Assembly: GCA_964057225.1 (NCBI GenBank)
Contig: OZ059894.1
Location: 13,144,001-13,208,000, forward strand
Length of the DNA stretch: 64,000 bases
Direction of reading: 5' to 3'
From: Auanema rhodensis
Lineage: Eukaryota > Animalia > Nematoda
Part shown: positions 42,001 through 64,000 of the stretch, one piece after another
Numbering within the stretch: position 1 is the first letter of the stretch
Layout: each line of letters starts with the position of its first letter
Translations under genes and position numbers: made by a program
The notes under the pieces: generated by a model
Database searches by the model: none
Told to the model about the DNA's origin: nothing
What the model saw: the letters and a program-made list of their open reading frames with translations, nothing else

Positions 42001-45000
42001 ACAATAATTTCGAAACAAATCATCCAGTTAATAATGTTTTTAACAGTAAAGTAGATATAATTTTAATTATTTTGATACTCAAAAAAGAAAACATGAAAAT
42101 ATTTTATAATTTTCCAATTCATTTTACTCCATTTTCTTCATTTAATCACGTATTTTGAAACAATCTCATATTTTTACAATAGTTTTGAAACAATTCATTC
42201 GTTCATTAAGATTTTAAACAGTGAAAAAAAAAAGTTTGAGTATTTTGATACTCAAGAAATAAAACATGAAAATATTTTATAATATTCCAATTCATTTTAC
42301 TCTATTTTCTTCATTTAATCATGTTTCTTGGAACAATTTTAAATTTTACAATAATTTCGAAACAAATCATCCAGTTAATAATGTTTTTAACTGTAAAGTA
42401 GATATAATTTTAATTTATTTTGATACTCAAAAAATAAAACATAAAAATATTTTATAATTTTCCAATTCATTTTACTCCATTTTCTTCATTTAATCACGTA
42501 TTTTGAAACAATCTCATATTTTTACAATAGTTTTGAAACAATTCATTCGTTCTGTAAGATTTTAAACAGTGAAAAAAAAAAGTTTAAATATTTTGATACT
42601 CAAGAAATAAAACATGAAAATAATTTATAATTTTCCAATTCATTTTACTCCATTTTCTTCATTTAATCACGTATTTTGAAACAATCTCGAATTTTTACAA
42701 TAGTTTTGAAACAATTCATTCGTTCATTAAGATTTTAAACAGTGAAAAAAAAAAGTTTGAATATTTTGATACTAAAAAAATAAAACATGAAAATATTTTA
42801 AAATTTTCCAATTCATTTTACTCTATTTTCTTCATTTAATCACGTATTTTGAAACAATCTCAAATTTTTACAATAGTTTTGAAACAATTCATTCGTTCAT
42901 TGAGATTTTAAACAGTGAAAAAAAAAGTTTGAATATTTTGATACTCAAGAAATAAAACATGAAAATATTTTATAATTTTCCAATTCATTTTACTCCATTT
43001 TCTTCATTTAATCACGTATTTTGAAACAATCTCAAATTTTTACAATAGTTTTGAAACAATTCATTCGTTCATTGAGATTCTAAACAGTGAAAAAAAAAGT
43101 TTGAATATTTTGATACTCAAGAAATAAAACATGAAAATTTTTTATAATTTTCCAATTCATTTTACTCTATTTTCTTCATTTAATCATGTTTCTTGGAACA
43201 ATTTTAAATTTTTACAATAATTTCGAAAAAAATCATTCATTTAATAATGTTTTTAACAGTAAAGAAGATATAATTTTAAATATTTTGATACTCAAAAAAT
43301 AAAACATGAAAATATTTTAAAATTTTCCAATTCATTTTACTCTATTTTCTTCATTTAATCATGTTTCTTGGAACAATTTTAAATTTTACAATAATTTCAA
43401 AACAAATCATCCAGTTAATAATGTTTTTAACAGTAAAGTAGATATAATTTTAATTATTTTGATACTCAAAAAATAAAACATGAAAATATTTTATAATTTT
43501 CCAATTCATTTTACTCTATTTTCTTCATTTAATCACGTATTTTGAAACAATCTCAAATTTTTACAATAGTTTTGAAACAATTCATTCGTTCATTAAGATT
43601 TTAAACAGTGAAAAAAAAAAGTTTGAATATTTTGAAACTCAAGAAATAAAACATGAAAATATTTTATAATTTTCCAATTCATTTTACTCCATTTTCTTCA
43701 TTTAATCACGTATTTTGAAACAATCTCATATTTTTACAACAGTTTTGAAACAATTCATTCGTTCATTAAGATTTTAAACAGTGAAAAAAAAAAGTTTGAA
43801 TATTTTGATACTCAAGAAATAAAACATGAAAATATTTTATAATATTCCAATTCATTTTACTCTATTTTCTTCATTTAATCATGTTTCTTCGAACAATTTT
43901 AAATTTTACAATAATTTCGAAACAAATCATCCAGTTAATAATGTTTTTAACAGTAAAGTAGATATAATTTTAATTATTTTGATACTCAAAAAATAAAACA
44001 TGAAAATATTTTATAATTTTCCAATTCATTTTACTCTATTTTCTTCATTTAATCATGTTTCTTGGAACAATTTTAAATTTTACAATAATTTCGAAACAAA
44101 TCATCCAGTTAATAATGTTTTTAACAGTAAAGTAGATATAATTTTAATTATTTTGATACTCAAAAAATAAAACATGAAAATATTTTATAATTTTCCAATT
44201 CATTTTACTCCATTTTCTTCATTTAATCACGTATTTTGAAACAATCTCATATTTTTACAATAGTTTTGAAACAATTCATTCGTTCATTAAGATTTTGAAT
44301 AGTGAAAAAAAAAATTTTGAATATTTTGATACTCAAGAAATAAAACATGAAAATATTTTATAATATTCCAATTCATTTTACTCTATTTTCTTCATTTAAT
44401 CATGTTTCTTGGAACAATTTTAAATTTTACAATAATTTCGAAACAAATCATCCAGTTAATAATGTTTTTAACAGTAAAGTAGATATAATTTTAATTATTT
44501 TGATACTCAAAAAAGAAAACATGAAAATATTTTATAATTTTCCAATTCATTTTACTCCATTTTCTTCATTTAATCACGTATTTTGAAACAATCTCATATT
44601 TTTACAATAGTTTTGAAACAATTCATTCGTTCATTAAGATTTTAAACAGTGAAAAAAAAAAGTTTGAGTATTTTGATACTCAAGAAATAAAACATGAAAA
44701 TATTTTATAATATTCCAATTCATTTTACTCTATTTTCTTCATTTAATCATGTTTCTTGGAACAATTTTAAATTTTACAATAATTTCGAAACAAATCATCC
44801 AGTTAATAATGTTTTTAACTGTAAAGTAGATATAATTTTAATTTATTTTGATACTCAAAAAATAAAACATAAAAATATTTTATAATTTTCCAATTCATTT
44901 TACTCCATTTTCTTCATTTAATCACGTATTTTGAAACAATCTCATATTTTTACAATAGTTTTGAAACAATTCATTCGTTCATTGAGATTTGAAACATTAA

Positions 45001-48000
45001 AAACGATCTTAATTTGAATTTTCTGATACTAAAAAAATAAAACATGGAAATATTTTATAATTTTCCAATTCATTTTACTCCATTTTCTTCATTTAATCAC
45101 GTATTTTGAAACAATCTCAAATTTTTACAATAGTTTTGAAACAATTCATTCGTTCATTAAGATTTTAAACAATGAAAAAAAAAAGTTTGAATATTTTGAA
45201 ACTCAAGAAATAAAACATGAAAATATTTTATAATTTTCCAATTCATTTTACTCCATTTTCTTCATTTAATCACGTATTTTGAAACAATCTCATATTTTTA
45301 CAATAGTTTTGAAACAATTCATTCGTTCTGTAAGATTTTAAACAGTGAAAAAAAAAAGTTTAAATATTTTGATACTCAAGAAATAAAACATGAAAATAAT
45401 TTATAATTTTCCAATTCATTTTACTCCATTTTCTTCATTTAATCACGTATTTTGAAACAATCTCGAATTTTTACAATAGTTTTGAAACAATTCATTCGTT
45501 CATTAAGATTTTAAACAGTGAAAAAAAAAAGTTTGAATATTTTGATACTAAAAAAATAAAACATGAAAATATTTTAAAATTTTCCAATTCATTTTACTCT
45601 ATTTTCTTCATTTAATCACGTATTTTGAAACAATCTCAAATTTTTACAATAGTTTTGAAACAATTCATTCGTTCATTGAGATTTTAAACAGTGAAAAAAA
45701 AAGTTTGAATATTTTGATACTCAAGAAATAAAACATGAAAATATTTTATAATTTTCCAATTCATTTTACTCCATTTTCTTCATTTAATCACGTATTTTGA
45801 AACAATCTCAAATTTTTACAATAGTTTTGAAACAATTCATTCGTTCATTGAGATTCTAAACAGTGAAAAAAAAAGTTTGAATATTTTGATACTCAAGAAA
45901 TAAAACATGAAAATTTTTTATAATTTTCCAATTCATTTTACTCTATTTTCTTCATTTAATCATGTTTCTTGGAACAATTTTAAATTTTTACAATAATTTC
46001 GAAAAAAATCATTCATTTAATAATGTTTTTAACAGTAAAGAAGATATAATTTTAAATATTTTGATACTCAAAAAATAAAACATGAAAATATTTTAAAATT
46101 TTCCAATTCATTTTACTCTATTTTCTTCATTTAATCATGTTTCTTGGAACAATTTTAAATTTTACAATAATTTCAAAACAAATCATCCAGTTAATAATGT
46201 TTTTAACAGTAAAGTAGATATAATTTTAATTATTTTGATACTCAAAAAATAAAACATGAAAATATTTTATAATTTTCCAATTCATTTTACTCTATTTTCT
46301 TCATTTAATCACGTATTTTGAAACAATCTCATATTTTTACAATAGTTTTGAAACAATTCATTCGTTCATTAAGATTTTAAATAGTGAAAAAAAAAATTTT
46401 GAATATTTTGATACTCAAGAAATAAAACATGAAAATATTTTATAATATTCCAATTCATTTTACTCTATTTTCTTCATTTAATCATGTTTCTTGGAACAAT
46501 TTTAAATTTTACAATAATTTCGAAACAAATCATCCAGTTAATAATGTTTTTAACAGTAAAGTAGATATAATTTTAATTATTTTGATACTCAAAAAAGAAA
46601 ACATGAAAATATTTTATAATTTTCCAATTCATTTTACTCCATTTTCTTCATTTAATCACGTATTTTGAAACAATCTCATATTTTTACAATAGTTTTAAAA
46701 CAATTCATTCGTTCATTAAGATTTTAAACAGTGAAAAAAAAAAGTTTGAGTATTTTGATACTCAAGAAATAAAACATGAAAATATTTTATAATATTCCAA
46801 TTCATTTTACTCTATTTTCTTCATTTAATCATGTTTCTTGGAACAATTTTAAATTTTACAATAATTTCGAAACAAATCATCCAGTTAATAATGTTTTTAA
46901 CTGTAAAGTAGATATAATTTTAATTTATTTTGATACTCAAAAAATAAAACATAAAAATATTTTATAATTTTCCAATTCATTTTACTCCATTTTCTTCATT
47001 TAATCACGTATTTTGAAACAATCTCATATTTTTACAATAGTTTTGAAACAATTCATTCGTTCATTGAGATTTGAAACATTAAAAACGATCTTAATTTGAA
47101 TTTTCTGATACTAAAAAAATAAAACATGGAAATATTTTATAATTTTCCAATTCATTTTACTCCATTTTCTTCATTTAATCACGTATTTTGAAACAATCTC
47201 AAATTTTTACAATAGTTTTGAAACAATTCATTCGTTCATTAAGATTTTAAACAATGAAAAAAAAAAGTTTGAATATTTTGAAACTCAAGAAATAAAACAT
47301 GAAAATATTTTATAATTTTCCAATTCATTTTACTCCATTTTCTTCATTTAATCACGTATTTTGAAACAATCTCATATTTTTACAATAGTTTTGAAACAAT
47401 TCATTCGTTCTGTAAGATTTTAAACAGTGAAAAAAAAAAGTTTAAATATTTTGATACTCAAGAAATAAAACATGAAAATAATTTATAATTTTCCAATTCA
47501 TTTTACTCCATTTTCTTCATTTAATCACGTATTTTGAAACAATCTCGAATTTTTACAATAGTTTTGAAACAATTCATTCGTTCATTAAGATTTTAAACAG
47601 TGAAAAAAAAAAGTTTGAATATTTTGATACTAAAAAAATAAAACATGAAAATATTTTAAAATTTTCCAATTCATTTTACTATATTTTCTTCATTTAATCA
47701 CGTATTTTGAAACAATCTCAAATTTTTACAATAGTTTTGAAACAATTCATTCGTTCATTGAGATTTTAAACAGTGAAAAAAAAAGTTTGAATATTTTGAT
47801 ACTCAAGAAATAAAACATGAAAATTTTTTATAATTTTCCAATTCATTTTACTCTATTTTCTTCATTTAATCATGTTTCTTGGAACAATTTTAAATTTTTA
47901 CAATAATTTCGAAAAAAATCATTCATTTAATAATGTTTTTAACAGTAAAGAAGATATAATTTTAAATATTTTGATACTCAAAAAATAAAACATGAAAATA

Positions 48001-51000
48001 TTTTAAAATTTTCCAATTCATTTTACTCTATTTTCTTCATTTAATCATGTTTCTTGGAACAATTTTAAATTTTACAATAATTTCAAAACAAATCATCCAG
48101 TTAATAATGTTTTTAACAGTAAAGTAGATATAATTTTAATTATTTTGATACTCAAAAAATAAAACATGAAAATATTTTATAATTTTCCAATTCATTTTAC
48201 TCTATTTTCTTCATTTAATCATGTTTCTTGGAACAATTTTAAATTTTTACAATAATTTCGAAACAAATCATCCAGTTAATAATGTTTTTAACAGTAAAGA
48301 AGTTATAATTTCAAATATTTTGATACTCAAAAAATAAAACATGAAAATATTTTATAATTTTCCAATTCATTTTACTCTATTTTCTTCATTTAATCACGTA
48401 TTTTGAAACAATCTCATATTTTTACAATAGTTTTGAAACAATTCATTCGTTCTGTAAGATTTTAAACAGTGAAAAAAAAAAGTTTAAATGTTTTGATACT
48501 CAAGAAATAAAACATGAAAATATTTTATAATTTTCCAATTCATTTTACTCCATTTTCTTCATTTAATCACGTATTTTGAAACAATCTCGAATTTTTACAA
48601 TAGTTTTGAAACAATTCATTCGTTCATTAAGATTTTAAACAGTGAAAAAAAAAAGTTTGAATATTTTGATACTAAAAAAATAAAACATGAAAATATTTTA
48701 TAATTTTCCAATTCATTTTACTCCATTTTCTTCATTTAATCACGTATTTTGAAACAATCTCATATTTTTACAATAGTTTTGAAACAATTCATTCGTTCAT
48801 TAAGATTTTAAACAGTGAAAAAAAAAGTTTGAATGTTTTGATACTCAAGAAATAAAACATGAAAATATTTTATAATATTCCAATTCATTTTACTCTATTT
48901 TCTTCATTTAATCACGTATTTTGAAACAATCTCATATTTTTACAATAGTTTTGGAACAATTAATTCGTTCATTAAGATTTGAAACATTAAAAGCGATCTT
49001 AATTTGAATTTTCTGATACTAAGAAAATAAAACATGGAAATATTTTATAATTTTCCAATTCATTTTACTCCATTTTCTTCATTTAATCACGTATTTTGAA
49101 ACAATCTCAAATTTTTACAATAGTTTTGAAACAATTCATTCGTTTATTAAGATTTTAAACAGTGAAAAAAAAAAGTTTGAATATTTTGAAACTCTAGAAA
49201 TAAAACATGAAAATATTTTATTATTTTCCAATTCATTTTACTCCATTTTCTTCATTTAATCACGTATTTTGAAACAATCTCATATTTTTCCAATAGTTTT
49301 GAAACAATTCATTCGTTCATTAAGGTTTTAAACAGTGAAAAAAAAAGTTTGAATGTTTTGATACTCAAGAAATAAAACATGAAAATATTTTATAATATTC
49401 CAATTCATTTTACTCTATTTTCTTCATTTAATCACGTATTTTGAAACAATCTCATATTTTTACAATAGTTTTGGAACAATTAATTCGTTCATTAAGATTT
49501 GAAACATTAAAAGCGATCTTAATTTGAATTTTCTGATACTAAGAAAATAAAACATGGAAATATTTTATAATTTTCCAATTCATTTTACTCCATTTTCTTC
49601 ATTTAATCACGTATTTTGAAACAATCTCAAATTTTTACAATAGTTTTGAAACAATTCATTCGTTCATTAAGATTTTAAACAGTGAAAAAAAAAAGTTTAA
49701 TTATTTTGATACTCAAGAAATAAAACATGAAAATATTTTATAATTTTCCAATTCATTTTACTCCATTTTCTTCATTTAATCACGTATTTTGAAACAATCA
49801 CATATTTTTACAATAGTTTTGAAACAATTCATTCGTTCATTGAGATTTGAAACATTAAAAACGATCTTAATTTGAATTTTCTGATACTAAAAAAATAAAA
49901 CATGAAAATATTTTAAAATTTTCCAATTCATTTTACTCTATTTTCTTCATTTAATCACGTATTTTGAAACAATCTCAAATTTTTACAATAGTTTTGAAAC
50001 AATTCATTCGTTCATTGAGATTTTGAACAGTGAAAAAAAAAGTTTGAATATTTTGATACTCAAGAAATAAAACATGAAAATATTTTATAATTTTCCAATT
50101 CATTTTACTCCATTTTCTTCATTTAATCACGTATTTTGAAACAATCTCAAATTTTTACAATAGTTTTGAAACAATTCATTCGTTCATTAAGATTTTAAAC
50201 AGTGAAAAAAGAAAGTTTGAATATTTTGATACTAAAAAAATAAAACATGAAAATATTTTAAAATTTTCCAATTCATTTTACTCTATTTTCTTCATTTAAT
50301 CACGTATTTTGAAACAATCTCAAATTTTTACAATAGTTTTGAAACAATTCATTCGTTCATTGAGATTTTAAACAGTGAAAAAAAAAGTTTGAATATTTTG
50401 ATACTCAAGAAATAAAACATGAAAATTTTTTATAATTTTCCAATTCATTTTACTCTATTTTCTTCATTTAATCATGTTTCTTGGAACAATCTCAAATTTT
50501 TACAATAGTTTTGAAACAATTCATTCGTTCATTAAGATTTTAAACAGTGAAAAAAAAAAGTTTGAATATTTTGATACTAAAAAAATAAAACATGAAAATT
50601 TTTTATAATTTTCCAATTCATTTTACTCTATTTTCTTCATTTAATCATGTTTCTTGGAACAATCTCAAATTTTTACAATAGTTTTGAAACAATTTATTCG
50701 TTCATTAAGATTTTAAACAGTGAAAAAAGAAAGTTTGATTATTTTGATACTAAAAAAATAAAACATGAAAATATTTTAAAATTTTCCAATTCATTTTACT
50801 CTATTTTCTTCATTTAATCACGTATTTTGAAACAATCTCAAATTTTTACAATAGTTTTGAAACAATTCATTCGTTCATTGAGATTTTAAACAGTGAAAAA
50901 AAAAGTTTGAATATTTTGATACTCAAGAAATAAAACATGAAAATTTTTTATAATTTTCCAATTCATTTTACTCTATTTTCTTCATTTAATCATGTTTCTT

Positions 51001-51573
51001 GGAACAATTTTAAATTTTTACAATAATTTCGAAACAAATCATTCATTTAATAATGTTTTTAACAGTAAAGAAGATATAATTTTAAATATTTTGATACTCA
51101 AAAAATAAAACATGAAAATATTTAAAAATTTTCCAATTCATTTTACTCTATTTTCTTCATTTAATCATGTTTCTTGGAACAATCTCAAATTTTTACAATA
51201 GTTTTGAAACAATTCATTCGTTCATTAAGATTTTAAACAGTGAAAAAAAAAGTTTGAATATTTTGAAACTCAAGAAATAAAACATGAAAATATTTTATAA
51301 TTTTCCAATTCATTTTACTCCATTTTCTTCATTTAATCACGTATTTTGAAACAATCTCATATTTTTACAATAATTTCAAAACAAATCATCCAGTTAATAA
51401 TGTTTTTAACAGTAAAGTAGATATAATTTTAATTATTTTGATACTCAAAAAATAAAACATGAAAATATTTTATAATTTTCCAATTCATTTTACTCTATTT
51501 TCTTCATTTAATCATGTTTCTTGGAACAATTTTAAATTTTACAATAATTTCAAAACAAATCATCCAGTTAATA
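1..51573. repeat. AT-rich tandem satellite array, ~173-bp monomer (left arm); putative centromeric/pericentromeric satellite
   Basis: TTAATCACGT at 1 recurs at 174 and then every ~171-175 bp, always in the same orientation. Class A monomers read CACGTATTTTGAAACAATCTCA...TTCATTCGTTC...GTGA(9-10)GTTTG. Class B monomers read CATGTTTCTTGGAACAATTTT...AAATCATCCAGTTAATAATG...GTAAAGTAG. Sub-class C carries GATTTGAAACATTAAAAACGATC. All share the ~70-bp block AAATAAAACATGAAAATATTTTATAATTTTCCAATTCATTTTACTC(C/T)ATTTTCTTCATTTAATCA. The centromeric role is inferred only from monomer size and HOR organisation. Confidence 0.98.
29800..48200. repeat. Higher-order repeat domain: 16-monomer (2776 bp) unit with 8-, 12-, 13- and 14-monomer derivatives
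   Basis: The diagnostic variant TTTAACTGTAAAG recurs at 31113, 32501 and 35277 (spacings 1388 and 2776). The marker 79-aa spurious ORF recurs at 34805, 36887, 39663, 41919, 44347 and 46429 (spacings 2082, 2776, 2256, 2428, 2082 = 12, 16, 13, 14, 12 monomers). Private variants (CTCGAAT, GATTCTAAAC, CGAAAAAAATC, CTTCGAAC, TTGAGTATT) keep a fixed order. Domain limits are approximate. Confidence 0.88.
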
Positions 51574-51606
51574 CTTATTTTTTACTATGTTAAGACGTTA
51601 AAAATA
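51569..51606 (-). repeat. 3' terminal extension (rE) beyond the 3' ITR, including the TAATA core
   Basis: 33 bp (51574-51606) present at this end only and not matched at the other terminus; its reverse complement lies in the ICR (51959-51991). Equivalent to the rE segment of DIRS-1. Confidence 0.9.
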
Positions 51607-51759
51607 TATTATATTTATTCGACTATAGCTATATTGTTTAACATGACCTCACGTGATAAAAGAAAAATTTTCCAAAATTTAAATAACAAGACCGTGTGAA
51701 AGAGGGCTAAAGGCGGGAAACCGGGGTATAAAGGGCAAGAAAGTGGTAAGTAAAGTCAG
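51607..51759 (-). repeat. 3' inverted terminal repeat (153 bp)
   Basis: Reverse complement of 55840-55992 with a single mismatch (T51616 vs C55983). Confidence 0.96.
51614..51619 (-). terminator. Candidate polyadenylation signal AATAAA of the element transcript
   Basis: Plus-strand TTTATT reads AATAAA on the coding strand, 40 nt before the element end. The other ITR has AATCAA at this position. Confidence 0.55.
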
Positions 51760-51761
51760 AT
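51727..51761 (+). promoter_or_regulatory. Mirror copy of the TATA/Inr promoter in the 3' ITR (candidate antisense promoter)
   Basis: TATAAA at 51727-51732 and TCAGAT at 51756-51761 (A at +31), pointing into the element on the non-coding strand. Confidence 0.4.
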
Positions 51762-51939
51762 CTATAAAAAAAGAAAAAACAAAAGAGGGGGGAAACAAGA
51801 TGCCGGGAAGTAAGGTGGCGCATGTTTCATCTTCTTGGAGCCTGATTTTTGGGAGGGCGGCGGAATCTGAAATCAACGAGTGCAGAGGGAGAGAAGAGGA
51901 ATCCGAAGGTGGTGAAGAAAGGGGTGGCAGGCGGGAGAC

Positions 51940-52016
51940 TAGTCGAATAAATATAATATATTTTTAACGTCTTAACATAGTAAAAAATAAGTATTATATT
52001 GATTCGACTATAGCTA
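51940..52016. repeat. Internal complementary region (ICR), 77 bp
   Basis: 51940-51996 is the exact reverse complement of 51569-51625, and 51992-52016 is the exact reverse complement of 55968-55992. The two parts overlap in TATTA (51992-51996). On the coding strand the ICR starts 2 bp after the recombinase stop codon. Confidence 0.96.
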
Positions 52017-52018
52017 GT

Positions 52019-53233
52019 CTAAGAAAGGACGGATTCCTGGAAAGAAGGCCTCTTACAGTAATGACTGAAAAAGGTGCTTTCCGAGGCCCAATTCGCCGCT
52101 TCTAAGATGGTCTTAACCGGAAGCCCATTTTTAAAGACCTTCGAAGTAGCCGCAGCCCGAACAGAGTGTGCTTTAAACTTGGTGGAGATTCCTGCTTCTT
52201 CCAAGCAGGATCTGATCCAGCCGGCTACCGTGGTAGCGGTGACAGGTTCCCCCCGGTTCACGCTAATAAGTAAGCTGCGTGACTGACGAATCCGTGTGGT
52301 AGCGGATATGTACGCGTTTATGCAGGCAACGGGACAGATGAGGGAGCGATCTGGATGGTTCTCGAAAGAGGCTTCCCGAGGAGGGCCTTTCCTTCTATTC
52401 TTATTTCTAAACTCAATGAAGAAGGTAATTTCCTGCGGGTCGAGCCGCATGCTATCCAGAGATAGGGAGGCTAATTCGGATGCGCGCTGAGGCGAACACA
52501 AAGCTAGCAGGGTGGCTAATTTGCGAGTTAATGTGTGTAAGGGAAGGTCGGTATTTGGGCCCAGCCCAGCGAGGTGATCTAAGACTGTAGAGGGATTCCA
52601 AACATCCATGTACCTGGCCCTTGGGGGTTTGGTACGGTAAATCCCTCGTAGCAGCTGTTTGAGCATGGGGTCTTCCCTAATGGAAGGGGTCACCGAGTAG
52701 TGTTCCGCCAGGAGACAGAGGGCAGATTTGGCCGTGGAAGCTGAAGAGAAGCTGCGGTGTTCAGCACGAATAGAGAGGAAGTTAGCGACATTGGTAGCGG
52801 TAGGCACAAAGTCAATCTGCGTTTGGATACAGTACTTCTCCCACATTCTGTATACCGAATTGTATTGCCTTCGAGTACCCGGAGCGAGAGCGTTAACCAG
52901 GAGATGTTTAGTCTGCTCCGAAATGCCATCTATGTGGGAGGTTAGATCTTCCACGCCGCCAGGGCGAAATTCTTTGTCCCTAGGAGGGGATGAGAGTTTC
53001 CTTCTTTGTCCTGAAGGAGGTGAGGGTGGTGAAGAACTAAGGGAGTCTCCTGGGCTAGTTGGGTTAGGAGGGGGAATCAAATTTGACTCTTCCAAACCGG
53101 GGCTACCAGAATGGCTCGTCTGCCGGAGCTTGCTAGTCTGTTGATCGTCCTCTTGAGGAGGTGGAAAGGCGGGAAGGCGAAGAGAAGCCCTTGAGGCAGC
53201 AATTTCCAGTTGTGCGAGAAGGCGTCTACGCAA
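52019..53233 (-). CDS. Tyrosine recombinase (DIRS-type; N-terminal core-binding domain plus catalytic domain); true start uncertain
   Basis: Core-binding region LAPGTRRQY..W..Y...VANFL. Catalytic motifs SPQRASEL (R), RNKN (K), AHSVRAAATS (HxxR), AANW (W), STFFSHY (Y). The annotated start is TTG and the first ATG is codon 130 (52846). The first ~100 codons are low-complexity and overlap the MT domain in the -1 frame. Confidence 0.93.
   Translation of the reverse strand: MRRRLLAQLEIAASRASLRLPAFPPPQEDDQQTSKLRQTSHSGSPGLEESNLIPPPNPTSPGDSLSSSPPSPPSGQRRKLSSPPRDKEFRPGGVEDLTSHIDGISEQTKHLLVNALAPGTRRQYNSVYRMWEKYCIQTQIDFVPTATNVANFLSIRAEHRSFSSASTAKSALCLLAEHYSVTPSIREDPMLKQLLRGIYRTKPPRARYMDVWNPSTVLDHLAGLGPNTDLPLHTLTRKLATLLALCSPQRASELASLSLDSMRLDPQEITFFIEFRNKNRRKGPPREASFENHPDRSLICPVACINAYISATTRIRQSRSLLISVNRGEPVTATTVAGWIRSCLEEAGISTKFKAHSVRAAATSKVFKNGLPVKTILEAANWASESTFFSHYCKRPSFQESVLS
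52942..53076 (-). pseudogene. In-frame C-terminal remainder of the methyltransferase-like domain beyond the TGA
   Basis: Manual translation after the TGA gives FPLLTQLAQETPLVLHHPHLLQDKEGNSHPLLGTKNFALAAWKI then TAA (52942-52944). This fits the typical DIRS MT tail Q.WFP.L...P..L...HPL....L.AW, recalled from family knowledge rather than aligned. Confidence 0.75.
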
Positions 53234-55806
53234 AAGGCTTCTTCGTCTAAAAGAAAGGAGCAGTAGAGAGCGGTTTTTGCGTTCCAGCGGGATGCAAAGA
53301 GGTCGAAGGACGGCACACCGTAGCTCCGGAAGATGCTAGCAGCCACTTCCGGATGGAGGGCCCAGTCCTCGTGGAGGCACTTGCCTCTAGATAGTTGGTC
53401 TGCTGAGAGGTTCAGTTTCCCAGCTATGTGCGTAGCCCTAATCCGAATATCGCGTTGTCTGCAAAAGTCCCACAGATCGCGTGCTAACTCCGAACCTCTC
53501 TCGGAGGCCGCGCCGCCGCGTCTGTTGATGTAGGTGATGGCTGAGGTATTATCGATTAGTAGGAGAACGTCTACTTTGCGCCACTTCGAGCCGAAGTGTA
53601 CCAGAGCTATGAAAGCCGCCGTAAGTTCTAGCCAGTTAATGTGTTGCGAGGACCTTTCAAGGGGAGACCATTTTCCTGAAATGGTGTTCCCCTCCCAAGT
53701 AGCTCCATATCCTTCGCCAGAGGCGTCGGAGGTAATAGAGAAGGTCGGTGAAAAAGGGACTAGTGAGCTAGCCGAGCGGAGGGTCAGAGACTCCTTGGAT
53801 AAGATACCATTCAAGGTTTTCCGAAGGTCTGCCCTAATCGAGACGGAGGTGGAGCGCGATTTAGGGTCGTTTATGTTAGGAATGCCCATCCGTCTTAGGT
53901 CAAATTGGATTTGGCGAACCCAGAACGAAAGGTGTGGATGTACCACCGTGGCAAAGTTTAGTCTCCCAATAAAGGAAGATAACGTTCCTAACAGGGAAAC
54001 CTGAGACCGGAGTAGAGACAGCAAGGTAGCGTCTATCACATCCTGTTTTCCTGGGGGAAGGCGCCATTGTAGTTTACTCGAGTCTATCTCTAGACCTAAA
54101 AACTCAAGAGATTGGGTTGGTATAAGGATAGATTTCTCAAAGTTAATTGAGAAACCTGCCTCTTCAAATAGTCTGATTGCACGGTGAGCGTGGTGTGCTA
54201 CTCTAGCTGCGGACGAGTCTAAGAATAGCCAGTCGTCTAGGTAATTAATTAGCCGTATGCCCAGCTCTCTGAGGGACGCCGCGAGAACTCTCATGAGTTT
54301 GTGGAACACATAAGGGGCTGTGCCGAGGCCAAAGGGGAGGACGCAGAAAACAAACTGACATCCATCGATCTCAAACCCCAGGAAGGATTGATGTTCGCTA
54401 GCGATAGGGATAGAGTGGTAAGCCGCCTGGAAATCTACCTTACATAGCCAATCGTTATGTTGTAGGACCGAAGGTAGGTCCCGAATCGACTCCAGTTTAA
54501 AATGGGGTATCCTTATAAAGGAGTTGAGATTCTTCAGGTTAAGAATGAAGCGGCTAGATCCGTCTGCCTTCGGTACGAAAAAGGTGGAGGATATATAGAC
54601 CCTTTCTCCTGGGTGAGCTAGTCTAATGGCCCCCGTGTTTAAGAGTTCCGCAATAAGGGGGTTAGAGGGAAGAGGAGATGTCTGCGTGGTGTGACGGGAT
54701 AACTGGCGTCCTGGTTCCACCCCGGAGAAGGGAAGGCGATAGCCTTGTACTACGCTAAGGATATCAAGATCCTTAGAGATGGTCGACCAAAATTCCAGAT
54801 GGGATAAAAGGGCTCCTGCCCGAAAAGGAACGGACCTGTTGCTAGTGTTGGTCCTATAGGTGGGTCGAGCTGGTTGTCCCGGACGTTGATTTGATAGTGG
54901 CCTTGTGCGTTGGTGGTCCCTGGAGTTGGAGTTGGTTCTGGACGTTCTTGAGAGTTCGGAGAACGCTGAGAGTTCCGCTCTCAGTTTCTTTCCAAAAAGT
55001 TCTGGAGCTAACTCCTGAGAAAATACATTATTAGGTATTGGACGCTTGTGGCAATTTACCTCCTGCGAACTATCGAGCGGAATGGTGGATCCGTAGAGCG
55101 GAGCTTTCTTGTAACTCGGCATGGCCTTGATTGGCTGGGACTGTTTCATTTTGAGGAGAGCGACCTCCCGGAGGTGAGTGTAGTTCGTTTTGATGTTGGC
55201 GCTCAGAAAACGTTCCGTAATGTTGAGGTAGGCCTGCTGCTTGGAGGAGAGTGGAGATTTGTTGTCGATCTTAGCGAGCTTCCTGATAATGCGCAGGCCC
55301 GCGAGAGCGTTGAGTGTATTCTCATACGAGGCTCTTATGTCACTTTCACTGATCTTGACTGACGGTTTTACGGAGACATCCACATGGGTAGTATATCTTT
55401 CATCCAAAACTGGTAACCGTGCGAAGGGAGAGTCCAAAATTGGGAGTTCGGATAGGATGTCCGACCTATCAGCATGCGACATGGAACAGCCTGAAGCGAG
55501 CCGTTCAAAATCGGCGAGTTCGGAGCCTGCTAATCGGACTAAGGGCCTGGTGCGAGGTCCCTGTGACTCGGGTGGCATTGGTACAAAGTCATCTTCGTCC
55601 GAGGAGTCCCCTTGAACTGGGTCGAGTTCATGATGGAAGTGCTCCAGGGGGTCGTCGTGGGTAGAGTTGGAAGAAGCAGGGCGAACATCGCGTTGCGAAG
55701 AATCCATGGAGGCGTCGGAAGACATTGAGGCAGATGAGCGGCCCCTTTTCGGAGCAGGCTCACTGTCAGGGGCTTGTCCCTTCTTGATGGTTCGAGAGGG
55801 AGCCAT
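53077..55806 (-). CDS. Fused Gag-like / reverse transcriptase / RNase H / N6-adenine methyltransferase-like polyprotein
   Basis: ATG at 55806 (the ORF track starts at an upstream TTG, 55836). Gag-like N-terminus with PELFG and an R/S/N-rich tail. RT: W..I..D....VVQGYRLPF, VDFQAAYHSIPI, LPFGL..AP, YLDD (54232-54243), FLG. RNase H: TSDAS, HINWLEL, IDNTSA, HIAGKLN..AD.LSR. MT-like: DLFAS..N, DAF...W, AFPPF (FPPF at 53164-53175). It ends at a TGA that appears premature (see findings). Confidence 0.94.
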   Translation of the reverse strand: MAPSRTIKKGQAPDSEPAPKRGRSSASMSSDASMDSSQRDVRPASSNSTHDDPLEHFHHELDPVQGDSSDEDDFVPMPPESQGPRTRPLVRLAGSELADFERLASGCSMSHADRSDILSELPILDSPFARLPVLDERYTTHVDVSVKPSVKISESDIRASYENTLNALAGLRIIRKLAKIDNKSPLSSKQQAYLNITERFLSANIKTNYTHLREVALLKMKQSQPIKAMPSYKKAPLYGSTIPLDSSQEVNCHKRPIPNNVFSQELAPELFGKKLRAELSAFSELSRTSRTNSNSRDHQRTRPLSNQRPGQPARPTYRTNTSNRSVPFRAGALLSHLEFWSTISKDLDILSVVQGYRLPFSGVEPGRQLSRHTTQTSPLPSNPLIAELLNTGAIRLAHPGERVYISSTFFVPKADGSSRFILNLKNLNSFIRIPHFKLESIRDLPSVLQHNDWLCKVDFQAAYHSIPIASEHQSFLGFEIDGCQFVFCVLPFGLGTAPYVFHKLMRVLAASLRELGIRLINYLDDWLFLDSSAARVAHHAHRAIRLFEEAGFSINFEKSILIPTQSLEFLGLEIDSSKLQWRLPPGKQDVIDATLLSLLRSQVSLLGTLSSFIGRLNFATVVHPHLSFWVRQIQFDLRRMGIPNINDPKSRSTSVSIRADLRKTLNGILSKESLTLRSASSLVPFSPTFSITSDASGEGYGATWEGNTISGKWSPLERSSQHINWLELTAAFIALVHFGSKWRKVDVLLLIDNTSAITYINRRGGAASERGSELARDLWDFCRQRDIRIRATHIAGKLNLSADQLSRGKCLHEDWALHPEVAASIFRSYGVPSFDLFASRWNAKTALYCSFLLDEEAFCVDAFSHNWKLLPQGLLFAFPPFHLLKRTINRLASSGRRAILVAPVWKSQI

Positions 55807-55837
55807 AGCGTCCAAACTTGTGAGGCTCAAAAACAAA

Positions 55838-55872
55838 AACTGACTTTACTTACCACTTTCTTGCCCTTTATA
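55838..55872 (-). promoter_or_regulatory. Candidate RNA polymerase II core promoter: TATAAA at -31 and Inr TCAGTT
   Basis: The coding strand reads TATAAAGGGCAAGAAAGTGGTAAGTAAAGTCAGTT. TATA starts at 55872 and the Inr A(+1) is at 55841, 35 nt upstream of the gag ATG. TCAGTT matches the TCAKTY initiator consensus and the spacing is canonical. Confidence 0.62.
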
Positions 55873-55992
55873 CCCCGGTTTCCCGCCTTTAGCCCTCTTT
55901 CACACGGTCTTGTTATTTAAATTTTGGAAAATTTTTCTTTTATCACGTGAGGTCATGTTAAACAATATAGCTATAGTCGAATCAATATAATA
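55840..55992 (-). repeat. 5' inverted terminal repeat (153 bp)
   Basis: Reverse complement of 51607-51759 (152/153 identical). Contains the palindromes TCACGTGA (55943-55950) and TATAGCTATA (55966-55975). Confidence 0.96.
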
Positions 55993-58900
55993 ATGTTTTT
56001 AACAGTAAAGTAGATATAATTTTAATTATTTTGATACTCAAAAAATAAAACATGAAAATATTTTATAATTTTCCAATTCATTTTACTCTATTTTCTTCAT
56101 TTAATCATGTTTCTTGGAACAATTTTAAATTTTTACAATAATTTCGAAACAAATCATCCAGTTAATAATGTTTTTAACAGTAAAGAAGTTATAATTTCAA
56201 ATATTTTGATACTCAAAAAATAAAACATGAAAATATTTTATAATTTTCCAATTCATTTTACTCTATTTTCTTCATTTAATCACGTATTTTGAAACAATCT
56301 CAAATTTTTACAATAGTTTTGAAACAATTCATTCGTTCATTAAGATTTTAAACAGTGAAAAAAAAAAGTTTGAATATTTTGATACTCAAAAAATAAAACA
56401 TGAAAATATTTTAAAATTTTCCAATTCATTTTACTCTATTTTCTTCATTTAATCATGTTTCTTGGAACAATTTTAAATTTTACAATAATTTCAAAACAAA
56501 TCATCCAGTTAATAATGTTTTTAACATTAAAGTAGATATAATTTTAATTATTTTGATACTCAAAAAATAAAACATGAAAATATTTTATAATTTTCCAATT
56601 CATTTTACTCTATTTTCTTCATTTAATCACGTATTTTGAAACAATCTCAAATTTTTACAATAGTTTTGAAACAATTCATTCGTTCATTAAGATTTTAAAC
56701 AGTGAAAAAAAAAAGTTTGAATATTTTGATACTCAAAAAATAAAACATGAAAATATTTTAAAATTTTCCAATTCATTTTACTCTATTTTCTTCATTTAAT
56801 CATGTTTCTTGGAACAATTTTAAATTTTACAATAATTTCAAAACAAATCATCCAGTTAATAATGTTTTTAACATTAAAGTAGATATAATTTTAATTATTT
56901 TGATACTCAAAAAATAAAACATGAAAATATTTTATAATTTTCCAATTCATTTTACTCTATTTTCTTCATTTAATCATGTTTCTTGGAACAATTTTAAATT
57001 TTTACAATAATTTCGAAACAAATCATCCAGTTAATAATGTTTTTAACAGTAAAGAAGTTATAATTTCAAATATTTTGATACTCAAAAAATAAAACATGAA
57101 AATATTTTATAATTTTCCAATTCATTTTACTCTATTTTCTTCATTTAATCACGTATTTTGAAACATTCTCAAATTTTTACAATAGTTTTGAAACAATTCA
57201 TTCGTTCATTAAGATTTTAAACAGTGAAAAAAAAAAGTTTGAATATTTTGAAACTCAAGAAATAAAACATGAAAATATTTTATAATTTTCCAATTCATTT
57301 TACTCCATTTTCTTCATTTAATCACGTATTTTGAAACAATCTCATATTTTTACAATAGTTTTGAAACAATTCATTCGTTCATTGAGATTTGAAACATTAA
57401 AAACGATCTTAATTTGAATTTTCTGATACTAAAAAAATAAAACATGGAAATATTTTATAATTTTCCAATTCATTTTACTCCATTTTCTTCATTTAATCAC
57501 GTATTTTGAAACAATCTCAAATTTTTACAATAGTTTTGAAACAATTCATTCGTTCATTAAGATTTTAAACAGTGAAAAAAAAAAGTTTGAATATTTTGAA
57601 ACTCAAGAAATAAAACATAAAAATATTTTATAACTTTCCAATTCATTTTACTCCATTTTCTTCAATTAATCACGTATTTTGAAACAATCTCATATTTTTA
57701 CAATAGTTTTGAAACAATTCATTCGTTCATTAAGATTTTAAACAGTGAAAAAAAAAGTTTGAATGTTTTGATACTCAAGAAATAAAACATGAAAATATTT
57801 TATAATATTCCAATTCATTTTACTCTATTTTCTTCATTTAATCACGTATTTTGAAACAATCTCATATTTTTACAATAGTTTTGGAACAATTAATTCGTTC
57901 ATTAAGATTTGAAACATTAAAAGCGATCTTAATTTGAATTTTCTGATACTAAGAAAATAAAACATGGAAATATTTTATAATTTTCCAATTCATTTTACTC
58001 CATTTTCTTCATTTAATCACGTATTTTGAAACAATCTCAAATTTTTACAATAGTTTTGAAACAATTCATTCGTTCATTAAGATTTTAAACAGTGAAAAAA
58101 AAAAGTTTAATTATTTTGATACTCAAGAAATAAAACATGAAAATATTTTATAATTTTCCAATTCATTTTACTCCATTTTCTTCATTTAATCACGTATTTT
58201 GAAACAATCACATATTTTTACAATAGTTTTGAAACAATTCATTCGTTCATTGAGATTTGAAACATTAAAAACGATCTTAATTTGAATTTTCTGATACTAA
58301 AAAAATAAAACATGGAAATATTTTATAATTTTCCAATTCATTTTACTCCATTTTCTTCATTTAATCACGTATTTTGAAACAATCTCAAATTTTTACAATA
58401 GTTTTGAAACAATTCATTCGTTCATTAAGATTTTAAACAGTGAAAAAAAAAAGTTTGAATATTTTGAAACTCAAGAAATAAAACATGAAAATATTTTATA
58501 ATTTTCCAATTCATTTTACTCCATTTTCTTCATTTAATCACGTATTTTGAAACAATCTCATATTTTTACAATAGTTTTGAAACAATTCATTCGTTCATTA
58601 AGATTTTAAACAGTGAAAAAAAAAGTTTGAATGTTTTGATACTCAAGAAATAAAACATGAAAATATTTTATAATATTCCAATTCATTTTACTCTATTTTC
58701 TTCATTTAATCACGTATTTTGAAACAATCTCATATTTTTACAATAGTTTTGGAACAATTAATTCGTTCATTAAGATTTGAAACATTAAAATCGATCTTAA
58801 TTTGAATTTTCTGATACTAAGAAAATAAAACATGAAAATATTTTATAATTTTCCAATTCATTTTCCTCCATTTTCTTCATTTAATCACGTATTTTGAAAC

Positions 58901-61900
58901 AATCTCAAATTTTTACAATAGTTTTGAAACAATTCATTCGTTCATTAAGATTTTAAACAGTGAAAAAAAAAAGTTTGAATATTTTGAAACTCAAGAAATA
59001 AAACATGAAAATATTTTATAATTTTCCATTTCATTTTACTCCATTTTCTTCATTTAATCACGTATTTTGAAACAATCTCATATTTTTACAATAGTTTTGA
59101 AACAATTCATTCGTTCATTAAGATTTTAAACAGTGAAAAAAAAAGTTTGAATATTTTGATACTCAAGAAATAAAACATGAAAATATTTTATAATATTCCA
59201 ATTCATTTTACTCTATTTTCTTCATTTAATCATGTTTCTTGGAACAATTTTAAATTTTACAATAATTTCGAAACAAATCATCCAGTTAATAATGTTTTTA
59301 ACAGTAAAGTAGATATAATTTTGATTATTTTGATACTCAAAAAATAAAACATGGAAATATTTTATAATTTTCCAATTCATTTTACTCCATTTTCTTCATT
59401 TAATCACGTATTTTGAAACAATCTCAAATTTTTACAATAGTTTTGAAACAATTCATTCGTTCATTAAGATTTTAAACAGTGAAAAAAAAAGTTTGAATAT
59501 TTTGATACTCAAGAAATAAAACATGAAAATATTTTATAATATTCCAATTCATTTTACTCTATTTTCTTCATTTAATCATGTTTCTTGGAACAATTTTAAA
59601 TTTTACAATAATTTCGAAACAAATCATCCAGTTAATAATGTTTTTAACAGTAAAGTAGATATAATTTTGATTATTTTGATACTCAAAAAATAAAACATGG
59701 AAATATTTTATAATTTTCCAATTCATTTTACTCCATTTTCTTCATTTAATCACGTATTTTGAAACAATCTCAAATTTTTACAATAGTTTTGAAACAATTC
59801 ATTCGTTCATTAAGATTTTAAACAGTGAAAAAAAAAAGTTTAAATATTTTGATACTCAAGAAATAAAACATGAAAATATTTTATAATTTTCCAATTCATT
59901 TTACTCCATTTTCTTCATTTAATCACGTATTTTGAAACAATCACATATTTTTACAATAGTTTTGAAACAATTCATTCGTTCATTGAGATTTGAAACATTA
60001 AAAACGATCTTAATTTGAATTTTCTGATACTAAAAAAATGAAACATGGAAATATTTTATAATTTTCCAATTCATTTTACTCCATTTTCTTCATTTAATCA
60101 CGTATTTTGAAACAATCTCAAATTTTTACAATAGTTTTGAAACAATTCATTCGTTCATTAAGATTTTAAACAGTGAAAAAAAAAAGTTTGAATATTTTGA
60201 TACTCAAGAAATAAAACATGAAAATATTTTATAATATTCCAATTCATTTTACTCTATTTTCTTCATTTAATCATGTTTCTTGGAACAATTTTAAATTTTA
60301 CAATAATTTCGAAACAAATCATCCAGTTAATAATGTTTTTAACAGTAAAGTAGATATAATTTTAATTATTTTGATACTCAAAAAATAAAACATGAAAATA
60401 TTTTATAATTTTCCAATTCATTTTACTCTATTTTCTTCATTTAATCATGTTTCTTGGAACAATTTTAAATTTTACAATAATTTCGAAACAAATCATCCAG
60501 TTAATAATGTTTTTAACAGTAAAGTAGATATAATTTTAATTATTTTGATACTCAAAAAATAAAACATGAAAATATTTTATAATTTTCCAATTCATTTTAC
60601 TCCATTTTCTTCATTTAATCACGTATTTTGAAACAATCTCATATTTTTACAATAGTTTTGAAACAATTCATTCGTTCATTAAGATTTTAAACAGTGAAAA
60701 AAAAAAGTTTGAATATTTTGATACTCAAGAAATAAAACATGAAAATATTTTATAATATTCCAATTCATTTTACTCTATTTTCTTCATTTAATCATGTTTC
60801 TTGGAACAATTTTAAATTTCACAATAATTTCGAAACAAATCATCCAAATAATAATGTTTTTAACAGTAAAGTAGATATGATTTTAATTATTTTGATACTC
60901 AAAAAAGAAAACATGAAAATATTTTATAATTTTCCAATTCATTTTACTCCATTTTCTTCATTTAATCACGTATTTTGAAACAATCTCATATTTTTACAAT
61001 AGTTTTGAAACAATTCATTCGTTCATTAAGATTTTAAACAGTGAAAAAAAAAAGTTTGAATATTTTGATACTCAAGAAATAAAACATGAAAATATTTTAT
61101 AATATTCCAATTCATTTTACTCTATTTTCTTCATTTAATCATGTTTCTTGGAACAATTTTAAATTTTACAATAATTTCGAAACAAATCATCCAGTTAATA
61201 ATGTTTTTAACTGTAAAGTAGATATAATTTTAATTTATTTGATACTCAAAAAATAAAACATAAAAATATTTCATAATTTTCCAATTCATTTTACTCCATT
61301 TTCTTCATTTAATCACGTATTTTGAAACAATCTCATATTTTTACAATAGTTTTGAAACAATTCATTCGTTCATTGAGATTTGAAACATTAAAAACGATCT
61401 TAATTTGAATTTTCTGATACTAAAAAAATAAAACATGGAAATATTTTATAATTTTCCAATTCATTTTACTCCATTTTCTTCATTTAATCACATATTTTGA
61501 AACAATCTCAAATTTTTACAATAGTTTTGAAACAATTCATTCGTTCATTAAGATTTTAAACAATGAAAAAAAAAAGTTTGAATATTTTGAAACTCAAGAA
61601 ATAAAACATGAAAATATTTTATAATTTTCCAATTCATTTTACTCCATTTTCTTCATTTAATCACGTATTTTGAAACAATCTCATATTTTTACAATAGTTT
61701 TGAAACAATTCATTCGTTCTGTAAGATTTTAAACAGTGAAAAAAAAAAGTTTAAATATTTTGATACTCAAGAAATAAAACATGAAAATATTTTATAATTT
61801 TCCAATTCATTTTACTCCATTTTCTTCATTTAATCACGTATTTTGAAACAATCTCAAATTTTTACAATAGTTTTGAAACAATTCATTCGTTCATTGAGAT

Positions 61901-64000
61901 TTTAAACAGTGAAAAAAAAAGTTTGAATATTTTGATACTCAAGAAATAAAACATGAAAATATTTTATAATTTTCCAATTCATTTTACTCTATTTTCTTCA
62001 TTTAATCATGTTTCTTGGAACAATTTTAAATTTTACAATAATTTCGAAACAAATCATCCAGTTAATAATGTTTTTAACAGTAAAGTAGATATAATTTTAA
62101 TTATTTTGATACTCAAAAAATAAAACATGAAAATATTTTATAATTTTCCAATTCATTTTACTCCATTTTCTTCATTTAATCACGTATTTTGAAACAATCT
62201 CAAATTTTTACAATAGTTTTGAAACAATTCATTCGTTCATTAAGATTTTAAACAATGAAAAAAAAAAGTTTGAATATTTTGAAACTCAAGAAATAAAACA
62301 TGAAAATATTTTATAATTTTCCAATTCATTTTACTCCATTTTCTTCATTTAATCACGTATTTTGAAACAATCTCAAATTTTTACAATAGTTTTGAAACAA
62401 TTCATTCGTTCATTAAGATTTTAAACAGTGAAAAAAAAAAGTTTGAATATTTTGATACTAAAAAAATAAAACATGAAAATATTTTAAAATTTTCCAATTC
62501 ATTTTACTCTATTTTTTTCATTCAATCACGTATTTTGAAACAATCTCAAATTTTTACAATAGTTTTGAAACAATTCATTCGTTCATTGAGATTTTAAACA
62601 GTGAAAAAAAAAGTTTGAATATTTTGATACTCAAGAAATAAAACATGAAAATATTTCATAATTTTCCAATTCATTTTACTCAACAACAATTCATTCGTTC
62701 ATTAAGATTTGAAACATTAAAAACGATCTTAAATTGAATTTTCTGATACTAAGAAAATAAAACATGGAAATATTTTATAAAAACGATCTTAAATTGAATT
62801 TTCTGATACTAAGAAAATAAAACATGGAAATATTTTATAATTTTCCAATTCATTTTCATTCAATCACGTATTTTAAAACAATCTCAAATTTTTACAATAG
62901 TTTTGAAACAATTCATTCGTTCATTAAGATTTTAAACAGTGAAAAAAAAAAGTTTGAATATTTTGATACTCAAGAAATAAAACATGGAAATATTTTATAA
63001 TTTTCCAATTCATTTTACTCCATTTTCTTCATTTAATCACGTATTTTGAAACAATCTCAAATTTTTACAATAGTTTTGAAACAATTCATTCGTTTTGTAA
63101 GATTTTAAACAGTGAAAAAAAAAAGTTTGAATATTTTGAAACTCAAGAAATAAAACATGAAAATATTTTATAATATTCCAATTCATTTTACTCTATTTTC
63201 TTCATTTAATCATGTTTCTTGGAACAATTTTAAATTTTACAATAATTTCGAAACAAATCATCCAGTTAATAATGTTTTTAACAGTAAAGTAGATATAATT
63301 TTAATTATTTTGATACTCAAAAAATAAAACATAAAAATATTTTATAATTTTCCAATTCATTTTACTCCATTTTCTTCATTTAATCACGTATTTTGAAACA
63401 ATCTCATATTTTTACAATAGTTTTGAAACAATTCATTCGTTCATTGAGATTTGAAACATTAAAAACGATCTTAATTTGAATTTTTTGATACTAAAAAAAT
63501 AAAACATGGAAATATTTTATAATTTTCCAATTCATTTTACTCCATTTTCTTCATTTAATCACGTATTTTGAAACAATCTCAAATTTTTACAATAGTTTTG
63601 AAACAATTCATTCGTTCATTAAGATTTTAAACAAGGAAAAAAAAAGTTTGAATATTTTGAAACTCAAGAAATAAAACATGAAAATATTTTATAATTTTCC
63701 AATTCATTTTACTCCATTTTCTTCATTTAATCACGTATTTTGAAACAATCTCATATTTTTACAATAGTTTTGAAACAATTCATTCGTTCTGTATGATTTT
63801 AAACAGTGAAAAAAAAAAGTTTAAATATTTTGATACTCAAGAAATAAAACATGAAAATATTTTATAATTTTCCAATTCATTTTACTCCATTTTCTTTATT
63901 TAATCACGTATTTTGAAACAATCTCAAATTTTTACAATAGTTTTGAAACAATTCATTCGTTCATTGAGATTTTAAACAGTGAAAAAAAAAGTTTGAATAT
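55988..64000. repeat. AT-rich ~173-bp tandem satellite array (right arm)
   Basis: Resumes in exact register (TAATA-ATGTTTTTAACAGTAAAGTAG) with the same orientation and monomer classes. It carries more private substitutions and a rearranged monomer at ~62680-62860. Confidence 0.98.

Follow-up and report, generated by a model that had tools for sequence, protein, structure and literature searches.

A DIRS1-like retrotransposon inserted at a TATTA core in a satellite array of the nematode Auanema rhodensis

The stretch of DNA analysed here, which we call the window, comprises 64,000 nucleotides (nt) of the nematode Auanema rhodensis (contig OZ059894.1 of assembly GCA_964057225.1, positions 13,144,001 to 13,208,000). 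The whole of this window is a single tandem array of ~173-bp satellite monomers, and the sole high-GC interruption of the array is a block of ~49-50% GC at 51569-55992. This block is a recombinase retrotransposon of the DIRS1 type lying on the minus strand, a call that an initial annotation had made from the letters of the sequence and that is borne out by the geometry of its terminal and internal repeats and by its reverse transcriptase (RT) and recombinase domains. We consider it likely that we are dealing with a recent, nearly intact copy of an uncatalogued DIRS1-like family, which was integrated by its tyrosine recombinase at a TATTA of the satellite without any recognition specific to the satellite; the latter was probably hit for its many short AT-rich cores and for its tolerance of insertions. 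In other words, this is a new family of an already known kind, in an already known type of setting.

Read on the minus strand, the element is 4424 bp long, including a TATTA at each end (the 5' core at 55988..55992, common to the target and to the element terminus, and the 3' core at 51569..51573), and it amounts to a net insertion of 4419 bp. Its termini begin TATTATATTG. The left and right inverted terminal repeats (ITRs) are each 153 nt long (55840..55992 and 51607..51759, respectively) and differ from each other at one position; between the right ITR and the 3' core lies a right extension of 33 nt (51574..51606), which is complementary only to an internal complementary region (ICR) of 77 nt at 51940..52016. 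The two halves of the ICR overlap at the circular junction: the left half (52016-51992) is complementary to the 5' terminus at 25 of 25 positions, the right half (51996-51940) to the 3' terminus, right extension included, at 57 of 57, and the overlap, TAATA at 51996-51992, corresponds to the junction itself. All 82 pairs between the ICR and the termini are therefore perfect. A succession of ITR, left ICR half, right ICR half, ITR and right extension is the layout described for DIRS1-like elements (PMC3266345). The element has no direct terminal repeats, only inverted ones, and no known RNA family in Rfam matches it.

The single mismatch between the ITRs (55983/51616) deserves a comment. The left half of the ICR fits the G variant and the right half the T variant, so that either variant has its exact counterpart in the corresponding half; the mismatch is therefore a built-in asymmetry and not the product of decay after insertion. 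The earlier statement that the cis elements are close to perfect thus holds for the 153-nt ITRs with their one difference and for the ICR, which is flawless, but not in so far as the mismatch was counted as a blemish. The difference also has a consequence, since it creates an AATAAA (51619-51614) in the right ITR only, absent from both the left ITR and the left ICR half. The left ITR in turn contains a TATAAA at 55872-55867, ~60 nt upstream of the ATG of the long open reading frame (ORF). By analogy with the transcript model of DIRS-1 (PMC7192593), these motifs would act as promoter and polyadenylation signal, respectively. The closest relative of the element, contig L001 (see below), does not share this asymmetry.

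The insertion site could be reconstructed exactly. Division of the array at a conserved anchor, with each unit classed by its variable half, gives two monomer types, A and B, which follow one another irregularly: runs of BB and BBB are frequent, AAAA also occurs, and the array is not a regular AB dimer. When the two flanks of the element were joined without the TATTA and used as a query against the window, they gave many full-length matches to uninterrupted B-type sites, at 96-97.5% identity and each with one 5-nt gap. These uninterrupted sites read AACAT-TATTA-ACTGG on the minus strand, with a single TATTA where the element sits, and the clean insertion in a class B monomer that had been noticed at plus-strand CAGT/TAATA/ATG is accordingly exact to the nucleotide. 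The arithmetic of the units agrees: the interrupted unit of 4593 bp is 4419 bp plus a normal unit of 174 bp, with no other duplication or deletion. There is no target-site duplication, one TATTA being found on each side of the element. One could be tempted to see a large target duplication in the perfect direct repeat that flanks it (55993-56133 is 100% identical to 51400-51540, that is, 141 nt on either side), but this candidate was rejected, given that BB and BBB runs are common and that the unit has a normal length once the insert is taken out.

The circle junction predicted from the ICR reads ...AATAAG-TATTA-TATTGATT..., and exactly this pentamer is what the junction has in common with the target. 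A pentamer shared in this manner would be the signature expected of conservative recombination between a circular copy and its target. The published rule, drawn from 28 annotated DIRS1-like elements, is a core of 3 bp, most often ATT with AAT at the junction (PMC3266345); both are present here, ATT in the TATTA core and AAT in the junction. If the steps of the published DIRS model are applied to the present case, a transcript would begin in the left ITR and end in the right ITR; it would be reverse-transcribed, its missing termini being rebuilt on the ICR (which is required for the retrotransposition of DIRS-1; PMC7192593), and the product would be a circle with the junction ...AAG-TATTA-TATTG.... 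The tyrosine recombinase would then exchange strands between this junction and the identical TATTA of a B-type monomer, which would leave the element between two copies of TATTA, nothing else being duplicated or lost.

The coding part of the element consists of two overlapping frames. The longer one, called pol below (53077..55806, minus strand), starts with the ATG at 55806, stops at an in-frame TGA (53079-53077) and combines gag-like, RT, RNase H and, by homology, methyltransferase-like regions. Its first ~320 residues are gag-like, with no CCHC zinc-finger pattern in residues 1-330 and no Pfam match for this part. The RT domain is recognised as RVT_1 (E = 4.9e-18), and the YLDD motif as well as the RNase H motifs DAS/E/D can be read in the translation, colinear with L001. 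The C-terminal region of this frame is less easily assigned: it gives no direct Pfam match to Dam and only a weak one to PCIF1_WW (E = 0.025), whereas its last 200 amino acids (aa) share 43% identity with the part of protein P0002 in which a Dam match lies (E = 6e-6, under the Pfam cut-off). Among other relatives, the Dam score of P0001 (2.3e-8) passes the cut-off, and that of L001 is 0.006. We count a methyltransferase-like domain as present on the strength of this homology rather than of a direct test.

The pol frame of this copy is truncated unless the TGA is read through. L001 is open at the same position, and beyond the TGA our frame continues with a conserved C-terminal segment of 44 codons plus TAA (52942..53076, minus strand, the TAA at 52944-52942), which reads FPLL..HPHLL..HPLL..NFALAAWKI before the stop and is colinear with L001. 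Because of this stop codon the copy may not be autonomous. The stop may have been acquired after insertion or been copied in with the element. The element had been described as young and complete: it is indeed structurally complete and little decayed, but it is not fully intact, the TGA falling 44 codons before the conserved end of pol. Further upstream in the same frame, 45 nt at 55015..55059 (minus strand, 36% GC), reading GTAAAT...TTTTCTCAG, are exactly absent from L001, in which they correspond to a gap of 15 aa. This stretch resembles a short intron, and its splicing would keep the frame, which is equally kept if it is not spliced.

The recombinase frame (52019..53335, minus strand), which is open from 53335 onwards, overlaps the end of pol. 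Its homologous part extends from ~52951 to the TAG at 52021-52019, and the frame contains a Phage_integrase domain (E = 1.2e-13) in which the catalytic residues R156, K184, H262, R265, W288 and Y298 are all present, these residues being invariant in our alignment of recombinases; its best match, P0019, is 56% identical. The frame has no ATG before 52846, a point already inside the conserved domain, and ~130 codons upstream of the conserved part are open and free of ATG. The claim that the RT, RNase H and recombinase motifs are intact can therefore be kept for the motifs themselves and for every catalytic residue of the recombinase, but it has to be read together with the stop in pol and with a recombinase that lacks an upstream ATG. 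The lack of an ATG is not necessarily a flaw, because the recombinase frame of L001 is likewise open well upstream of its start and because long overlaps between ORFs have been described for DIRS1-like elements (PMC3266345); it may reflect an unusual mode of expression rather than damage. L001 has an ATG for its recombinase where the window reads CTA (52945-52943), and there the ATG and the stop of pol overlap in the manner of an ATGA.

That the family is undescribed, as the initial annotation had supposed, agrees with the outcome of our searches, since the family was not found elsewhere in the collections searched and the closest relative is only 57% identical. This relative, L001 (Logan contig SRR31646600_422430), is 57% identical in pol over 817 aa and 56% identical in the recombinase. 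It resembles our element in the fused gag-like/pol frame, in the C-terminal segment of pol and in a similar ICR with a ATATAATA junction, and differs in having neither the candidate 45-nt intron nor the stop in pol, and in having an ATG at the start of the recombinase. A HMMER scan of 1.84 billion representatives returned 2785 proteins at E <=1e-30, none of them above 40% identity to pol, and the best matches of a word-indexed protein search reached 39% for pol and 56% for the recombinase. A scan of viral contigs with pol found nothing, nor did a protein search aimed at fragments, in which the C-terminal 150 aa of the recombinase served as query. Two metagenome contigs that matched a 19-mer common to both ITRs were rejected as chance hits, having no similarity to the element.

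Nematodes (Oesophagostomum, Steinernema, Heligmosomoides, and Panagrolaimus with four entries) account for seven of the nine named proteins among the best matches; a fish and a wasp, lower in the list, supply the remaining two. A FastTree phylogeny of the 67 best library matches does not, however, join our element and L001 to the nematode clade: the two stand apart as a pair, on a long branch and without any supported partner, and the support for any placement is 53. L001 (run SRR31646600) and L006 (run SRR31646649, a member of the clade associated with nematodes) come from neighbouring run accessions, probably of one project.

One of the more distant relatives is L005, a complete ITR/ICR element of ~50% GC at ~4929-9964 of the Oesophagostomum dentatum contig KN550196.1. 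It has the same DIRS1-type architecture (ITRs of 257 nt at 98%, ICR halves of 38 and 70 nt at 100%), and its termini begin TATTATATT..., similar to those of our element; its pol is only 40% identical, and its junction and target overlap over 8 bp, TATATTAT. No tandem repeats were found in its flanks, which form imperfect inverted repeats, as if the element were nested in another repeat. The AT-rich terminal core that L005 shares with our element is therefore a trait of the wider lineage, and not a match or an adaptation to the present satellite. In a survey of 2014, a single partial copy in Pristionchus was the sole Dirs1-like element reported from Chromadoria (PMC4157794); L005 is a complete Dirs1-type element in the assembly of a rhabditid nematode. 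Another relative, L002 (80-4202 of a metagenome scaffold from the European Nucleotide Archive, 39% identity in pol), has perfect ITRs of 41 nt beginning ATTATATTT with TGTC on both sides, and no ICR was detected in it when the complement of its left terminus was searched. The flanks of two others, L007 and L009, are cut off at the contig ends.

In every structural feature of DIRS1-like elements that could be tested our element agrees with them, and it does not show the features that define Pat1-like elements and Ngaro. DIRS-1 of Dictyostelium discoideum and Pat1 were compared through their published descriptions. With DIRS-1 it has in common the ITRs, the ICR that complements both termini, the right extension and the absence of a target-site duplication, as well as the RT and RNase H domains, by homology a methyltransferase-like domain, the tyrosine recombinase and a repeat-rich, possibly centromeric location (PMC3266345, PMC7192593). 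The order of the ORFs is different, as the recombinase of DIRS-1 lies between gag and pol (PMC3266345), whereas here the gag-like part and pol form one frame and the recombinase comes after; moreover, DIRS-1 inserts mostly into its own copies, and our element sits in a satellite. The animal DIRS1-like elements of Piednoel et al. (2011; PMC3266345) are similar in their ATT termini, complementary to an AAT at the circular junction, in ICR halves of tens of nt, in the right extension and in the long ORF overlap; the identity between target and junction is 3 bp in these elements and 5 bp (TATTA) here, a difference that may be due to chance.

Nematode Pat1-like elements resemble ours in their domains (RT, RNase H, recombinase and, in our element by homology, methyltransferase-like) but carry split direct repeats and a Gag zinc finger (PMC4157794), in contrast to the inverted repeats of our element and its lack of a CCHC pattern. 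Ngaro and VIPER differ by their split direct repeats and by having no methyltransferase-like domain, where our element has inverted repeats and, by homology, a methyltransferase-like region. Finally, the CRM chromoviruses and ATHILA are retroelements of satellite arrays that possess a DDE integrase and direct long terminal repeats and produce target-site duplications. Our element is found inside a satellite array as they are, but uses a tyrosine recombinase and leaves no target-site duplication.

The setting itself is not new. DIRS elements accumulate in centromeric regions (PMC7192593, PMC5941688), and a build-up of DIRS1 in centromeric heterochromatin is already on record for Dictyostelium as well as for nototheniid fishes (PMC7192593, PMC5941688); in the fishes, DIRS elements were located in centromeric and pericentromeric repeats by fluorescence in situ hybridization, and homing to pre-existing copies was discussed (PMC5941688). 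What we add is one further case of a DIRS element within tandem repeats and, with it, a clean reference copy, annotated throughout, from a divergent DIRS1-like family; it shows the junction and core logic of the DIRS integration model unusually clearly.

The initial annotation suggested a family that targets the satellite, whose recombinase would recognise a motif of the B monomer as an attB-like site and most of whose copies would lie at the same position. We believe this to be unlikely. The insertion is precise and lies at a TATTA that is also present in the circle junction; TATTA is rare among the ATT sites of the satellite (141 of 8278), so that the 5-bp identity goes somewhat beyond the 3-bp rule, and some DIRS elements have been reported to home to particular sequences, for example to their own copies (PMC5941688, PMC7192593). 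Yet, with the element removed and both orientations counted, ~98 of the 141 TATTA sites are of the occupied B-monomer type (37 others represent one other position), and a recombinase needing nothing but TATTA would thus land there ~70% of the time, while, if ATT alone is needed, an overlap with the junction of at least 5 nt is expected by chance at 12.5% of the ATT sites of the satellite. An identity of 5 bp between junction and target is in our opinion suggestive at best as a sign of targeting. Beyond the core, target and junction agree in 9 of 24 flanking positions, a figure typical of other sites, and no extended homology was found there. The terminal motif is common to a relative lying in non-satellite DNA of another genome, which makes the core a trait of the lineage, and further copies that could show recurrence were not retrieved in the metagenome and protein searches. 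Nor is there a second copy in the 64 kb of the window, where a 25-mer of the ITR occurs exactly twice (none being expected by chance): there is one insertion, despite ~98 equivalent sites.

Taken by themselves, the data on the site speak neither for nor against a preference. Several points do weigh against our own reading of an integration without satellite-specific recognition. With a single insertion examined, there may be a real preference for this site of the monomer; the shared core is 5 bp here and 8 bp in the O. dentatum relative, against the usual 3 bp, and the recombinase may need more sequence than ATT. In addition, the complementary DNA of DIRS-1 was found by experiment to be mostly linear and single-stranded (PMC7192593), and the circular intermediate still belongs to the model. 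One could go further and suppose that our element and L001 represent a clade that needs a core of more than 3 bp (TATTA or more) and has specialised on one position of the B monomer, the satellite serving as a safe-harbour attB, but we would give little credit to such a scenario. Were a preference for the site real, the element would offer a natural case in which a tyrosine recombinase of a eukaryote selects a short and defined target within satellite DNA, which would bear on the colonisation of centromeric repeats by DIRS elements and on the site selection of recombinases in general. It is also improbable, we think, that the element is a dead passenger, an inactive copy kept under the weak selection acting on the satellite and maybe moved or duplicated by the dynamics of the array. 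The in-frame TGA in pol, the absence of an ATG in the recombinase where L001 has one, and the recent local homogenisation indicated by flanking monomers that are 100% identical over 141 nt could all be cited for this. But there are only one stop and no frameshift over ~950 codons of pol and ~310 of the recombinase, and the ICR pairs perfectly with the termini at all 82 positions; the element is alone in the window and was thus not amplified along with the array, and an open upstream frame without ATG, being also found in L001 and described elsewhere (PMC3266345), need not count as a defect. That a GC-rich contig was misjoined into the satellite during assembly, as the abrupt step from 19% to 50% GC might suggest, we hardly believe at all: the two junctions coincide with one TATTA of a single monomer, the phase of which is preserved (4593 = 174 + 4419 bp), and they are exactly those that the ICR of the element predicts, which a misjoin would not reproduce.

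On the minus strand, the upstream flank of the element is the satellite at 55993..64000 and the downstream flank the A and B monomers, mixed, at 1..51568; the former is the continuation of the latter. Tandem Repeats Finder gives a period of 173 (alternatively 347/348) with 86-90% matches. The GC content of the array is 19-20% throughout, and at least 59 kb consist of 173-bp monomers; the initial label of centromere-like is unproven. The satellite is much richer in AT than the alpha satellite of humans, and no retrotransposons with a tyrosine recombinase are known from mammals. Its k-mers had no match in the literature searched, including two papers on Meloidogyne satellites. Three units are of odd length (309, 513 and 4593 bp), the last being the one that contains the element. 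Perfect local duplications are present in the array at 11833-12106 (period 136) and at 62718-62840 (period 60).

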